A DNA stretch of 64,000 nt from Guillardia theta CCMP2712 (Eukaryota > Protista > Cryptophyta): assembly GCF_000315625.1 (NCBI RefSeq), contig NW_005434670.1, forward strand, positions 620,016 through 684,015, read 5' to 3'. Shown piece by piece: positions 1,845 to 8,070 of the stretch. Numbering within the stretch: position 1 is the first letter of the stretch; every line of letters begins with the position of its first letter. The translations under genes and the position numbers were made by a program. Below the pieces are notes generated by a model. It was not told the DNA's origin. It worked only from the letters and a program-made list of their open reading frames with translations, and did no database searches.

Positions 1845-3898
1845 AGGTGAAGGTCCCAGGAGGTAGACTGGAAGGCTGAGGCAAGGTAGGACGGCTAGGG
1901 GGAGAGTCCGGGAGCGTGCAGAATGAGGGAGTAAAGGAAGACGAGGAGGAGGAGGAGGAGGGAGCCAGGGGAGGTCGAAGAGAGGAGGTGAAAGAGTAAG
2001 CGGCATGTCATTAAATTAATCATTCACAAGCATCATATCAATAAACAATCGTATTCACATCTCTCTCCCTCCTCAGGTCGCCCCGGTGCTCCCCAGCGGC
2101 CCCCCGAGCAGGTCGCACAGCAAGTGGATGTTGGCGACGTACCCAGGGGCCTGCTGAGGCCCGAGCCCGTTGGGCCCACCGTCGGCCGAAGGCACTCCAG
2201 TAGGAAGAGGAAGAGACACTGGGGCCCTCCCCTGCCGCTGCTCGTCAGCTCCAGCTGGGCAGGACGAGAGGAGGATTACCTTGTCGTTGCCCGGTAGGTT
2301 CCGGTCAGACCCGACGGAGAGGATGCCGCGGTTGTCGAGGGAGTGTGCCCTGAGGGAAAGTGAGGAGGAGCAGCAAAACGAGAGGACGAAGGGGGTTGAG
2401 AAAGAACAGAGAAGAGCAGGCAGACAGAGCTCCTGACTGACTGACTGACTGACTTACTTACTGACTGACTGACACAAGAGAGAGGGAGAGAGAGGACAGA
2501 AGGAGAAGGGAAGGACGGAAGGGGAGAACAAGGAAAGAGAAGGATGGTAACAGGGGATCGCAACCTGAACTGTGAGGAGAACGATCCGTCCGATGCCGAC
2601 AGGCCGCCGCCATGGGAGCCAGAACCGTGGATGGAGCTGAAGGGTGGGCGCATGAAGCTCATGGGGTGAGGGAGCCCTTGGCCAGGAGGCAGCTGAGCAG
2701 GGTTGGCGTATCCTCTGAAGGGCTGCAAGGATGGAAACGGATCCATCTGCCGACTCGCGCTCGCTCCTGCCATGCTCCCTCCCCCGTAGCCGCCGGAAAG
2801 GGAAGCCGCTCGGAGCGGTCTCCTCCCCTGAGGTCCAGCGGTTCTCAAGGTTCCTCTCAGACAAGGAAGTCCTCTCCTCCTCCTCTACGAGTGAGCGCAG
2901 GCAATCTGATTCCTCCACTCACTCGCCTTGTGCTAGCAGGACGTGAAGGTGAAGGTCCCAGGAGGTAGACTGGAAGGCTGAGGCAAGGTAGGACGGCTAG
3001 GGGGAGAGTCCGGGAGCGTGCAGAATGAGGGAGTAAAGGAAGACGAGGAGGAGGAGGAGGAGGGAGCCAGGGGAGGTCGAAGAGAGGAGGTGAAAGAGTA
3101 AGCGGCATGTCATTAAATTAATCATTCACAAGCATCATATCAATAAACAATCGTATTCACATCTCTCTCCCTCCTCAGGTCGCCCCGGTGCTCCCCAGCG
3201 GCCCCCCGAGCAGGTCGCACAGCAAGTGGATGTTGGCGACGTACCCAGGGGCCTGCTGAGGCCCGAGCCCGTTGGGCCCACCGTCGGCCGAAGGCACTCC
3301 AGTAGGAAGAGGAAGAGACACTGGGGCCCTCCCCTGCCGCTGCTCGTCAGCTCCAGCTGGGCAGGACGAGAGGAGGATTACCTTGTCGTTGCCCGGTAGG
3401 TTCCGGTCAGACCCGACGGAGAGGATGCCGCGGTTGTCGAGGGAGTGTGCCCTGAGGGAAAGTGAGGAGGAGCAGCAAAACGAGAGGACGAAGGGGGTTG
3501 AGAAAGAACAGAGAAGAGCAGGCAGACAGAGCTCCTGACTGACTGACTGACTGACTTACTTACTGACTGACTGACACAAGAGAGAGGGAGAGAGAGGACA
3601 GAAGGAGAAGGGAAGGACGGAAGGGGAGAACAAGGAAAGAGAAGGATGGTAACAGGGGATCGCAACCTGAACTGTGAGGAGAACGATCCGTCCGATGCCG
3701 ACAGGCCGCCGCCATGGGAGCCAGAACCGTGGATGGAGCTGAAGGGTGGGCGCATGAAGCTCATGGGGTGAGGGAGCCCTTGGCCAGGAGGCAGCTGAGC
3801 AGGGTTGGCGTATCCTCTGAAGGGCTGCAAGGATGGAAACGGATCCATCTGCCGACTCGCGCTCGCTCCTGCCATGCTCCCTCCCCCGTAGCCGCCGG
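1696..3898. repeat. Direct tandem duplication, 2 x 1101 bp (1696-2796 and 2798-3898)
   Basis: Identical ORFs recur at offset 1102 (1755/2857, 2170/3272); no differences seen by eye. Confidence 0.95.
2433..2473. repeat. (GACT)n microsatellite in an intron (second copy ~3535-3575)
   Basis: ctgactgactgactgactgacttacttactgactgactgac. Confidence 0.9.
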
Positions 3899-6725
3899 CA
3901 TTTCCTGCCTGCCCTGCCATGATTCCTCCTCCCCCTGCCCCCTGCATCGCCTGCGGTATTCCGCTGCCAATCGCCCGATTCGCATCCCGAGCCCCCCAGC
4001 CCGGATGCTGCAGCAAAAGCAGCGTCACAAGAGCACGTGGGAGGGAGCAGGCTCACCTGAAGTCCAGCTGGAATCTGCTGTGGTGGCCAGTCTCCTCCCC
4101 CCTCGTCGTCGCTGCTCTCGCTGTCGAACCCTTCATTCGCGTTGTGCGCTGCTTGACTGTCGTGTGTCGCGACTTGTCCTGCGTGCTCGCTACGGTGCAG
4201 CTGAGCCGCCAGGTCCGACATGGCAGCGCTGCTGCGGTTGTTGCTGGGCGCTTGATGCATCTACGAGAGGAGCTGTGAGGAAGGAGCAGACAAAGAGAGC
4301 AGGGGAGGGGGTGCGGGGACAAGATTTACAAGTTGAAGTGCAACAGAGACATCGGAGGAGGAGGACAGCTCGCCAGCTGGTGGAGTGCTGAGGGAGAAGG
4401 AGACGGCAGGTTACCTGCATCTGATGCACGTTGAAACCCAGCGCAGAGCTCGAGACCTGCTGGGCGTTAGGGACGAGGCTGCAGGGAGGTTGACCGCCCT
4501 CACCGGCACTCCCGCACGAGCCGCCGGGAGCGGATATGAGGCGGCAGGGTGGAAGTTGCCTGTACCGGACCCGCCATTTTGTAGCCCAGTCATGACGGAG
4601 GAAAGAACTTTCTCGCGAACGTGCGCGGGGACTTTCTCCAAGCTAGCTCGCACCATGTTGGACAAGTGCTCGATGGAGAAGCTCTCCTCCCCAACAGCAG
4701 GCAGGGTCAGCCCTTGATCCAACAGTTTCCTGCCCTCCCCCCCAACGCCCTTCGACTTGTCCTCACCCTGCTCCACCCTCGCATCATGCACGAGTTGACG
4801 AGGAGCACCGTTGTCTCTGTGGATCATCGGAGGAAGATTCTCTTGCCATCCTGCAGAAAGGCTGGCCTGGCTCCCATCTTCCACCGACCTGGTCCTCGCA
4901 TTTCTACCGTTCGCAGCACCTGCATCAGCACCGTCGAACGCATCCTGCTTGCGTTTCTTCCCCTTGCCCGCACCCTTGTCCTCCTTCCTCGATCTCTTGG
5001 GCGCCTGCCTGTCCTCGGGCGAAGCGTCTCTACCATCGAAGTCATCCTCCATGTCAGACTCCGGGCTGAGGCTGCCATCAATCTCGAAGATGCCATCGTT
5101 CATGGCCCGAGCTGGCGACTGGTCCGAGGTCGGCTGCACGTGCACCAGCTCTGAGTTCACAAGATATGTCGGGTTGAGCATCACCCTCAGCTTCAGGATC
5201 AGAACATTGATCGCTTCCATCCTCAGCATCGCCTGACTCTGCGGCGTCTGCCCGTACTCCATCATCTTCGAGTCGATCAGCGCCAGGGACTTGTTGGCAC
5301 TCAGAAGCTTCCTGTGCGGCCATCGAATGATGCCGTGACGGCGACAAATCTTCTTGATCGCCGACATGCACAGTCCCAAACGATCGGCAGCCTGGTCAGC
5401 CGACATGTCGAAGTACTTCGCCAGCTCCTCGTAGAGCAGCGGTTTAGTTTGTGACCTGAACTCCCCCCGATACTGCTCCTCCACACGCACCCTCACCACC
5501 GATGTGTTGGGCTCCCGAGCTCGTATGTTCCCCTCCACAGCATTGCTGTCTCCCGACAGCATCTTGAGGTACGAATGGGCAAAGGTGTCCCCTTCCTCGA
5601 ACGCTCGCATCGGGTAGTGCTTGCCCTTCTCCTCCGTCTTCATCATCATATCGCACCTTCCTTTCACCACGATGAACCACACAAAGTCCGTGTCGCTGGG
5701 GCCCTTGATCGGCGATTCTCCATCATGCAACGTCATGTGCTGCATCGACCGGCAGATCGCCTCTCGTGCGGTAGTGGAGACGTACTTGAAAAACGGTAGC
5801 CTTTTTGAGAACTTGATGATGTTCTCAACATCGGCTTCTGACCTCTTGTCAGGTGCGACCTCCAGCGAAGTCTTGGCACTCTCCCACACCTTGGATGTTC
5901 CGGTTCGGGCCCGTCTCTGCGAGGAAGGCTTCCCGTTCTTGATGAATGAGAGGTTGGACTGCCCGAATCGCTGACAGACTTCTTGAAGGATATCGTTGGC
6001 AAGTGAGAATACAGTATTTTCAAGTTGTTCGTCGTAAGGAATCTTGGACCTGTACCATCGTTAGCCCATGAGGGAATGGACCATGGAAACTAGGATATGC
6101 CTGGAGTAGAATACAACAACTGAGACAACGTGCCCTTGTCTCGTTAAAGGAATGGCGTAACATGCCTTCAAGCCAGTCACCTGTATGACACAAGCGAACG
6201 TGTAAGATGCCTGCTCCTTCAGCTCGCAACTGCGCTCACCCTTGCTAGCTCTGAGCGAACGAAGAGGAGGTGAGGCAACACCGAAGCGTCTTCGTGCCAC
6301 TCTGTCTGCATAGTCTTCCACACGCGGCCAGGTATGCAGGCATACTGCACATCAATAAGTTCGTGTCCGTGAGGGAGCAAGGACGTTCAAAGGAGAGAAG
6401 GAAGCAAGGGGGTTGCAAACGGGATCTCTAACCTGCGGATAGTGAAAGTTCAGCGAGGCTTTATGGAAATCTTCGGCATTCGCATTGGCACAGTAGCATG
6501 CACCGCCATGTACCATGCATGTGTTGCCTGCGGGTCTGTAGGGCGAGAAGTCACTGAGAATGAAAAAGAACTCAAGCCTCTTACTTGAAGGCTTCCGCAT
6601 GCACAAAATCTCCTCGCATACAGACCTCCTTGAGTACCTGCGGAGCCAGCTATCAGCCTGCGAATGAACTAACTGTGCGCAGCTACCGAGTTTAAAATCG
6701 CTTCCAGTTGAGTATCGGCAGACAT
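3175..6725 (-). CDS. RWP-RK transcription factor with N-terminal GAF and cNMP-binding-like domains (NIT2/NLP-like)
   Basis: ATG at 6725 with an in-frame stop upstream. Spliced N-terminus MSADTQLEAILNSVLKEVCMRGDFVHAEAFKP...FHKASLNFHYPQYACIPGRVWKTMQTEWHEDAS...GLKACYAIPLTRQGHVVSVVVFYSR is GAF-like. KRSEADVENIIKFSKRLPFF...WFIVVKGRC...FEEGDTF is cNMP-like. YFDMSADQAADRLGLCMSAIKKICRRHGIIRWPHRK is RWP-RK. Low-complexity tail ends at TGA 3177-3175. Confidence 0.9.
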
Positions 6726-7129
6726 CTTGATCAGGCTCGTTCAAAAGTCCTGCCGCGACAAAAGGCTGGCAGCAGGCAGCGAAGTAGAAGTTCTGCGAAT
6801 AAAGGAGCAAATCCTTCTTGACAGAGCTATGACCAAGGGAAGGTCTAAAGCATCATTTCTTGACCATCATGGCTCACCAGTGCACGAATAAGAACGGCCT
6901 GGCGTTGAGAACTACCCACCACCTTACGGATTGATCCCAGGAAACACGAGATGACTTTGAGATGGTGGGAGGCAGCAATCTACGCTTCACAGAGCCTCTG
7001 TGTCACCATGCCATCTGCACTCTTCATGTTCAAGTCGTGTTTGGGTAATCCTCTTCCTTTCTCCCTCCTGTCGCCCTGCCCCTTACTTGCTCTCCAGCCT
7101 GCTCCGCCTCCTTCCCGCCATGCTGGCCA

Positions 7130-8070
7130 AACCCGAACCCTTCTCTATGACCCCCACCACCCCCTTCAACACTACCTACAGATCTAGCTACCCACCCATT
7201 CAACTTCTCCATTCAGTACCCTACCCAATCGAAATCCCCAAGTTTGATGCCACCCCCTCATAACCCCCAACAATACACCGGTGTTGGCAATGTATGCATC
7301 GCCTGGTAAAGACTTGGTACCCCACCCCATTCTGACTCTCATACCACCCCCTTCATTCCCAGATCGGTCTGGTTAACATCCCGTACTGACCCCACAAACC
7401 AAGCAAAATTAGAGGGCAGTGGACCAGAACCCCTACCCTTGTACCCACCCCACAATTTGATAAAAACCCTTGCCACCCCACCCTGGATCGCCTTCGATTC
7501 CATGACCACCTATGTACACCTTAACAAGCAAGCGAGCAAAATACAAATACGAGAGGACCCACCCTTTGGTTATCCACTGTCACTAGCACATGGATTATGT
7601 CACCCCTAAATCATATGCTAGAATGGCGTAGGGGTAATGACCACCCCAAGTGAGATACATCAAAACAGACTTCACAATACCACCCACCTTATTAACGTCC
7701 CGACTATTCGAGTGACTCTACTACCCCCTTTTGTAACCCACCCCATATGTTAACGCTTTCCTACCACCCCTTCAGAAAAATCGTAGGCTTGTAAACACAA
7801 CGATTGGAATATGTCAGTCCGCCTCGGAACAAAAAGACGCGAACATGTAGCTCTTCGACTGAACTCTCGTGGCTCTTTCAAGGGACACGAGTTTATACCT
7901 CTAGTGATGGTCCATCACCCCTACATTTTCCTACTTCTTGCAGACTGCACTGGGGTGGGTCTTGCAGGATGACCGTGGGTAGTAATTGCTGGTATGTACC
8001 AAAACACCCACCCCCAGAACCCTTTCTCCTTGTGAACGAGAGAGTAGGGTATAGTACCCTACCACGGAAC
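7130..8070 (-). promoter_or_regulatory. CCACCC/TACCC-rich tract (G-rich on the sense strand) upstream of the RWP-RK gene
   Basis: Roughly 18 CCACCC/TACCC words, mostly 30-60 bp apart; no credible ORF. Function is inferred from position only. Confidence 0.45.

Follow-up and report, generated by a model that had tools for sequence, protein, structure and literature searches.

A Guillardia theta RWP-RK transcription factor with a probable NLP-type GAF domain and a hidden, degenerate cyclic-nucleotide-binding fold

In eukaryotes, cyclic-nucleotide signaling is thought to run through kinases, exchange factors, and channels, and fusing a cyclic-nucleotide-binding (cNMP-binding) fold directly to a domain that binds DNA is seen as the bacterial way, that of CRP and FNR. 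Among the RWP-RK transcription factors, NIT2 of Chlamydomonas, reportedly the subject of work by Camargo and colleagues from 2007, is said to be a nitrate regulator that combines a GAF domain with RWP-RK; to our knowledge, it has no cNMP-binding fold between the two. The Arabidopsis protein NLP7, which consists of GAF-like, RWP-RK, and PB1 domains, senses nitrate according to Liu et al. (2022), whose work is summarized in PMC13766177 and PMC11062454; in reviews, the residues of its nitrate pocket appear as “HLY/AAA,” without numbering. Here we describe a gene of the cryptophyte Guillardia theta CCMP2712 that lies on the minus strand of a 64,000-nucleotide (nt) stretch of contig NW_005434670.1 (positions 620,016 to 684,015 of the forward strand; assembly GCF_000315625.1). 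This whole stretch is referred to below as the window, and all coordinates are those of the window. The gene codes for an expressed nuclear transcription factor of 913 amino acids, in which a GAF domain is followed by a linker, a cNMP-binding fold, and an RWP-RK domain, an architecture that is real and conserved. The protein is thus an RWP-RK factor that has, besides a probable NLP-type GAF domain, a hidden and degenerate cNMP-binding fold. An earlier annotation, made from the letters of the window without database searches (hereafter, the sequence-only reading), did not know this architecture as described, and we likewise found no account of it in the searchable literature, whose coverage leaves out most subscription journals.

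In the list of open reading frames (ORFs), the locus appears as a single long minus-strand ORF (4411-5889), with GAF motifs in short fragments upstream of it, each flanked by candidate GT-AG boundaries when read on the minus strand. The sequence-only reading had placed the gene at 3175-6725 and had spliced four short 5' exons to the RWP-RK exon, one of them through a GC-AG intron at 6050-6100. To examine the transcripts, window positions 2800-7200 (4401 letters) were compared with four runs, X7, X8, X11, and X22. In X7, X8, and X11, which come from three different studies, one Logan RNA contig per run bears all ten joints. These contigs join the 5' exons to the RWP-RK exon and contain the GC-AG intron exactly as proposed; the number of exons had been underestimated, as five short coding exons precede the large exon and five more follow it. 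The longest ORF of the spliced mRNA extends over 913 amino acids from the ATG at 6725 to the stop codon at 3175-3177, which bears out the proposed gene coordinates, and both the start and the C-terminus of this protein agree with those of its orthologs. After shifts within ambiguous bases, nine of the ten introns (3334-3381, 3452-3666, 4008-4056, 4261-4414, 4457-4503, 6181-6239, 6345-6432, 6536-6584, and 6638-6686) are of the GT-AG type, and the remaining one (6050-6100) is GC-AG. The latter, 51 nt in length, is in frame and contains a stop codon. If it were kept unspliced, translation would stop directly behind the GAF domain; the RNA contigs compared included no form that retains it. The public runs fall into two groups, DNA-like runs with 0.83-1.00 of the words and a large group with approximately 0.69 of them, which is the fraction expected of spliced RNA, and the gene is expressed in ordinary-culture RNA-seq of several studies. 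In the protein collection, the locus is represented only by an unspliced ORF call of 566 amino acids (P0001), and the spliced 913-residue form is absent.

The RWP-RK DNA-binding domain (amino acids 330-389; 5263-5442) is recognized by Pfam (PF02042; match at 5302-5433) with a score of 66.7 bits against a cut-off of 29.3 and an E value of 1.7e-18. Its RWPxRK motif reads RWPHRK (amino acids 369-374; 5308-5325), one position away from where the sequence-only reading had put it (approximately 5309-5326). The same reading had suggested a cNMP-type fold directly before this domain, and such a fold is indeed predicted for amino acids 178-327 (5449-5898) by profile searches of the Protein Data Bank (PDB), AlphaFold2 (AF2) modeling, and Foldseek. 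In a single-sequence search of the PDB, the cNMP-binding domain of RapGEF6 ranked first (E value of 0.014). With the profile of a family alignment of 20 sequences (A1), in which the window protein is the first row, the best matches were Epac2 (1o7f; 1.3e-7) and RapGEF6 (2d93; 1.1e-6), followed by PKA regulatory subunits and PKG; cNMP-binding domains accounted for all of the best 22 and for most of the 46 matches listed. The AF2 model built from A1 consists of a helical N-terminal bundle, an eight-strand β-sandwich, and a short cassette helix, with block means of the predicted local distance difference test (pLDDT) of approximately 70-94 for residues 51-160 and 171-190. The loop that follows the cassette helix, which is variable in the family, has pLDDT values of less than 50 (residues 166-170). 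When this model was compared with the PDB by Foldseek, the top 50 matches were all cNMP-binding domains, the best of them Epac2 (3cf6; E value of 6e-9), and the template modeling (TM) scores were 0.57-0.64 when normalized on single-domain targets. In Pfam searches, for which the gathering cut-off of cNMP_binding (PF00027) is 27.5 bits, the ortholog P0013 (E value of 0.017), the paralog P0017 (5e-4), and P0016 (5e-5) gave sub-threshold matches of 15.5-23.6 bits. From these profile comparisons and the predicted structure, we regard it as established that the middle domain has a cyclic-nucleotide-binding fold homologous to cNMP-binding domains. Its connector to the DNA-binding domain is very short: in the model, the last strand and a hinge helix (residues 191-196) lead into RWP-RK from approximately residue 203.

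An exhaustive profile search of 1.84 billion proteins retrieved 4146 sequences at E values of up to 1e-3, and the matches at 1e-16 to 1e-25 included multidomain proteins in which Pfam confirmed a five-fold cNMP_binding arrangement. The nearest relatives of the middle domain outside the RWP-RK proteins are large proteins that each contain four to six such domains (P0049, P0071, P0079, P0084, P0089, P0091, and P0093), and they have in common with it an N-terminal helical motif, W..c...L....R(S/T)..d...i..f. This set of proteins could mark the donor of the middle domain.

The equivalent of the phosphate-binding cassette (FEEGDTFAHSYLKML...NIRA; 5518-5601) was delimited by hidden Markov model (HMM) alignments to Epac2 and to a protein with a Pfam-confirmed cyclic-nucleotide-binding domain. 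Aligned in this way with Epac2 and with the canonical domain of P0079 (...GDTFGEKALISDVPRSATI...), the window sequence FEEGDTFAHSYLKML...AVEGNIRA departs from both at each of the three key residues, with Gly replaced by Ala, Glu by His, and Arg by Val. The sequence-only reading was therefore right in calling the cassette degenerate but had counted the Arg of “NIRA” as the cassette Arg. That residue aligns to strand β7 and is not a family feature, since it is a Glu in two paralog clades (HIES and QIES). In the three cryptophyte clades taken together, the cassette Gly is Ala or Ser, the Glu is His, Tyr, Ala, or Gln, and the Arg position is not conserved. As Gly, Glu, and Arg are all replaced, the canonical contacts with cyclic AMP (cAMP) or cyclic GMP (cGMP) are missing, and to judge from these alignments, the window protein is unlikely to bind either nucleotide. 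At the same time, the cassette-equivalent segment is the best-conserved part of the domain (mean column identity of 0.84 vs 0.70 for the domain), with invariant F, E, D, T, S, Y, and M residues. The altered cassette is thus under constraint, which may come from a contact or from another ligand.

The GAF-like region, amino acids 2-165, is spread over exons 1-6 (6722 to 5935). The Pfam domain GAF_NLP (PF22922; cut-off, 24.1 bits) was found in the ortholog P0013 (28.8 bits) and in a paralog from the same genome, L003 (949-2307; 31.1 bits), while the score of P0006 (24.1 bits) is at the cut-off; weaker matches to the Pfam domains GAF_2 and GAF accompany GAF_NLP in the relatives scanned. Over amino acids 1-415, a span that takes in all three domains, the window protein shares 74-77% of its residues with P0013 and P0006, P0013 being the 74%-identical ortholog. 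It retains the residues that are invariant in the GAF block of the family and has the PGRVW..EW motif. The family scores are low (24-31 bits); RWP-RK proteins that carry GAF_NLP, P0065 and P0076 among them, reach 133-156 bits. An hhalign comparison of the GAF profile of the family (A3) with one bona fide GAF_NLP domain (P0065, residues 150-340) returned a probability of 0.7%, the profiles being too shallow for this value to be informative. On these sequence comparisons, the N-terminus is probably a GAF domain of the NLP/NIT2 type, with thinner evidence than for the other two domains, and the proposed order of GAF-like region, cNMP-binding fold, and RWP-RK is upheld. Nitrate sensing by this domain would be by analogy with NLP7 and NIT2 only.

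The closest named homologs of the window protein come from Rhodomonas salina, Teleaulax amphioxeia, Geminigera, and Chroomonas, all of which are cryptophytes, so the architecture, which the sequence-only reading had proposed to look for across eukaryotes, is not unique to this gene. The G. theta genome (87,145,349 bases in 669 contigs searched) encodes three proteins that combine the cNMP-binding fold with RWP-RK, on contigs C4 (the window gene), C24, and C77, and at least 34 further matches to RWP-RK alone. The C24 paralog (L002:877-2067) is identical to the transcript-derived P0017. The C77 paralog (L003:949-2310) has GAF, cNMP-binding fold, and RWP-RK in one uninterrupted, intron-free ORF, whereas the GAF domain of the window gene is split over six exons. 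In the maximum-likelihood tree, the window protein groups with Rhodomonas and Teleaulax (99/99), L003 with Chroomonas (99/99), and P0017 with Geminigera (87/92), with starred support only for the window and L003 clades. Because each of the three copies groups with other genera, the duplications appear to predate these genera. In Rhodomonas salina, a preprint counted 56 RWP-RK-like genes and related them to a possible sexual cycle.

Two further proteins, P0058 and P0087, both from one EukProt transcriptome (transcriptome shotgun assembly prefix GILK01), branch outside the cryptophyte clades. They display the same order of GAF_NLP, cNMP-binding, and RWP-RK domains, with weak GAF_NLP matches and with Pfam cNMP_binding scores above the gathering score (33.4 and 30.8 bits, respectively), and their cassettes, FFGKKAL....R.ET and FFGKKGL....RAET, are Epac-like. 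The presence of such a cassette in deeper-branching relatives suggests that the ancestral protein may have been responsive to cyclic nucleotides. A word search for additional relatives of the GILK01 proteins found none. Among the 150 best representatives of the 1.84 billion proteins searched, the combination of the cNMP-binding fold with RWP-RK is found in this family only. Feature searches of the ESM Atlas yielded no cluster with all three domains; their leads, all of them below 0.9, were bacterial clusters with cNMP_binding and GAF, a chlorophyte cluster with RWP-RK and GAF_NLP (and PB1), and clusters with cNMP_binding.

The explanation that we consider the best overall, and somewhat favor, is that the GAF domain receives a signal and that the cNMP-binding fold, devoid of the residues for the cyclic phosphate, relays it to RWP-RK. 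As in NLP7 and NIT2, it would be the GAF domain that receives the signal. The middle domain, having lost the residues that hold the cyclic phosphate, would no longer read cAMP or cGMP and would have been conserved as an allosteric relay that couples the GAF signal to DNA binding or dimerization via the hinge. Since the hinge helix leads without a break into the first helix of RWP-RK, a change in the β-barrel or the cassette could set DNA binding or dimerization; such a change might be triggered by contact with the GAF domain, by a modification, or by some other ligand. The coupling would resemble that from the C-helix of CRP to its helix-turn-helix (HTH) domain, although the domains here are of the eukaryotic type and the similar layout probably arose by convergence. 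As for the biological output, nitrogen regulation is the leading guess, drawn from the analogy with NIT2 and the NLPs.

Several observations weigh against this explanation. Strong conservation of the altered cassette is as compatible with another ligand as with a function as a relay. Searches with Pfam at E values of up to 10 found RWP-RK but no cNMP_binding domain in the large exon or in amino acids 128-393 of the window protein, so that the fold is shown by the family profile and the structure. For the GAF domain, AF2 modeling of P0013 from an 11-row alignment gave the right order of helices and strands but pLDDT values of less than 50 in the GAF region, and the A3 profile had no match among PDB sequences, NreA included, at E values of up to 10; the GAF fold is therefore supported by the Pfam scores of 24-31 bits of the orthologs and the paralog. 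Finally, RWPHRK is the usual form of the motif in RWP-RK proteins of the RKD/MID type, and NLPs have RWPSRK. The motif of the window protein is thus more RKD/MID-like than NLP-like, which weakens the analogy with nitrogen regulators.

Whichever mechanism applies, the same motif raises the possibility, in our view a doubtful one, that the protein functions in life-cycle or sexual differentiation, like RWP-RK factors of the MID/RKD type, and not in nitrate or nitrogen assimilation. We know of no NLP-type GAF domain in MID and RKD proteins, and this counts against such a role. The absence of PB1 and the Rhodomonas study, with its 56 RWP-RK-like genes and the context of possible sexual reproduction, point in its direction; the N-terminal GAF domain, which is NLP-type according to Pfam in the orthologs and the paralog, and the expression of the gene in ordinary-culture RNA-seq from several studies argue against it.

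A mechanistic alternative, which we regard as rather unlikely, is that the cNMP-binding fold still functions as a sensor but responds to another small molecule, such as a nucleoside, 2-oxoglutarate, or some other metabolite or anion, which would make the protein a true two-input regulator, as the sequence-only reading had proposed. It is in the cassette-equivalent segment that the three paralog clades are most conserved (0.84 vs 0.70), but this could equally reflect an intramolecular contact. The structural neighbors of the domain include the nucleoside-binding, cAMP-independent PKA regulatory subunits (PKA-R) of trypanosomes (6flo, 6h4g, and 6hyq) and DNR of the CRP/FNR family (3dkw and 2z69); the fold therefore serves other ligands elsewhere. 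On the other hand, the loop after the cassette helix is variable, with pLDDT values of less than 50 at residues 166-170. A dual sensor of nitrate and a second ligand is a reasonable but conjectural hypothesis, and its cyclic-nucleotide version is unlikely for this protein. In its evolutionary form, which we consider unlikely, the family would descend from a cyclic-nucleotide-gated RWP-RK factor, a eukaryotic analog of CRP. P0058 and P0087 may still act in that way, the cryptophyte pocket would have been remodeled for another metabolite, and in the window protein, a signal received by the GAF domain, possibly nitrate, would be combined with a second input from a small molecule. A reading of the middle domain as a canonical receptor for cAMP/cGMP, which would make the protein the CRP of a eukaryote, is highly improbable: the fold itself, its position directly before the DNA-binding domain, and the Epac-like FFGKK..L....R.ET cassettes of P0058 and P0087, which exceed the Pfam cNMP_binding cut-off, speak for it, but in the window protein, as in each of the three clades of cryptophytes, Gly and Glu of the cassette are replaced and the Arg position is not conserved, and the Pfam domain is absent from the window protein and below the cut-off in its orthologs and paralogs.

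The transcribed region of the gene (3092-7133, minus strand) comprises 11 exons, as defined by the spliced RNA contigs from X7, X8, and X11 and by poly(A)-tailed raw reads from X22, with its 5' end lying at least as far as 7133. The coding part of exon 1 (6687-6725) begins with the ATG at 6725-6723, a start position that is kept in P0013. The GAF domain continues through exon 2 (6585-6637; RNA joints 6535/6585 and 6634/6684, which conform to GT-AG once adjusted), exon 3 (6433-6535), exon 4 (6240-6344), which carries the IPGRVWK..EW motif, and exon 5 (6101-6180), which encodes the final strands (...VVVFYS). The large exon 6 (4504-6049), defined by RNA contigs and Pfam, covers the end of the GAF domain, the linker, the cNMP-binding fold, RWP-RK, a coiled/zipper region, and an acidic/basic low-complexity region. 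It is followed by a mini-exon of 42 nt (exon 7; 4415-4456), whose joints 4260/4415 and 4454/4502 are present in three RNA contigs, by exon 8 (4057-4260), which encodes a low-complexity C-terminal region, and by the Gly/Pro/Gln-rich exon 9 (3667-4007), the last two being without a Pfam domain. Exon 10 (3382-3451), whose joints are also seen in the raw RNA reads of X22, and the coding part of exon 11 (3175-3333), with the ANIHLLCDLLG motif and the stop codon at 3175-3177, complete the coding sequence. The 3' untranslated region (UTR) extends over 3092-3174 up to a poly(A) site at approximately 3091, placed by the X22 reads, which also confirm the two 3'-most introns. The 5' UTR (6726-7133) is at least 408 nt long and contains 8 upstream ATGs, so translational control via upstream ORFs is possible.

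In the protein, RWP-RK is followed by a helical, zipper-like segment and then by a long tail of low complexity with a short conserved motif at its end. The C-terminal half has no Pfam domain of any kind, and PB1, which had been reported missing in the sequence-only reading, was found by Pfam neither in the C-terminal exons of the window nor in the full-length ortholog P0002. Two C-terminal blocks are conserved in orthologs (P0002, P0008, or P0009), SIEHLSNMVRASLEKVP at 4579-4683 and ...ANIHLLCDLLG... at 3178-3249, the terminal motif ANIHLLCDLLG being common to P0002 and P0009. Neither block matches any family, and both could be interaction or localization motifs.

The 3' end of the gene lies in an exact tandem duplication of 1696-2797 and 2798-3899 (period of 1102 bp, with 1101 consecutive matching positions), which copies the last three exons, the stop codon, and the 3' UTR of the gene along with the 3' end of a convergent neighbor. 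The junction 2797|2798 was represented by 5 of 5 sampled words in three 2011 runs of one sample (X3-X5) and by 2 of 5 in DNA runs from 2021 and 2023 (X1 and X25); the duplication may be an assembly or library artifact or may be strain specific. Within the 215-nt intron 3452-3666, a (CTGA)n/(CTTA)n microsatellite precedes a GA-rich tract (3527-3600), and both have a copy at 2425-2498. A convergent plus-strand transcript (2800-3111) with a GT-AG intron at 2891-2939 ends at approximately 3111 and so overlaps the RWP-RK gene at its poly(A) site (approximately 3091) by some 20 nt; X7 merges both transcripts into one contig. A search of the whole window against Rfam produced no match.

With NIT2 the window protein shares an N-terminal GAF-type domain followed by RWP-RK, Gln/Gly-rich regions, the absence of PB1, and an algal origin, but it has the extra cNMP-binding fold and RWPHRK. 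Its likeness to plant NLPs consists in the GAF_NLP matches of the orthologs and the paralog, the PGRVW..EW motif, and the RWP-RK domain, whereas it lacks PB1, has the additional fold, and belongs to a family with low GAF_NLP scores (24-31 bits). The NIT2/NLP design of GAF and RWP-RK is thereby extended to an alga with a secondary plastid. CRP, FNR, and NtcA have a cNMP-binding fold immediately N-terminal to the DNA-binding domain, and DNR appears at Foldseek ranks 23 and 39. However, where the CRP/FNR family continues with a long dimerization helix and a winged HTH, the DNA-binding domain of the window protein is RWP-RK; HTH_Crp has no match in the protein, and a GAF domain is added. The “CRP-like” label of the sequence-only reading is thus appropriate for the layout but not for the relationship, as the best matches are to the eukaryotic Epac, PKA-R, and PKG, and the arrangement is most likely convergent with that of CRP/FNR. 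Epac2 and the RapGEFs (PDZ-GEFs) provide the best matches in both sequence (1o7f and 2d93) and structure (3cf6, 2byv, and 4f7z), N-terminal helical bundle included, and their FGK-type cassette is common to the distant relatives P0058 and P0087. In contrast to Epac2, the window protein lacks the cassette Gly, Glu/Lys, and Arg and is fused to a DNA-binding domain, not to a guanine nucleotide exchange factor (GEF). The cAMP-independent PKA-R of trypanosomes (6flo, 6h4g, and 6hyq), which are among the top structural matches, also have an altered cassette and no longer bind cAMP, but they operate as kinase regulators, and their ligands, according to the PDB titles, are nucleosides. Standard Pfam annotation labels the proteins of this family as RWP-RK only, which keeps the middle domain hidden in databases. 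Set beside the systems above, the family offers a natural series of cassettes, Epac-like at one end and remodeled at the other, and a eukaryotic case, conserved in three cryptophyte paralog clades, of a cNMP-binding fold joined to a DNA-binding domain, here RWP-RK.

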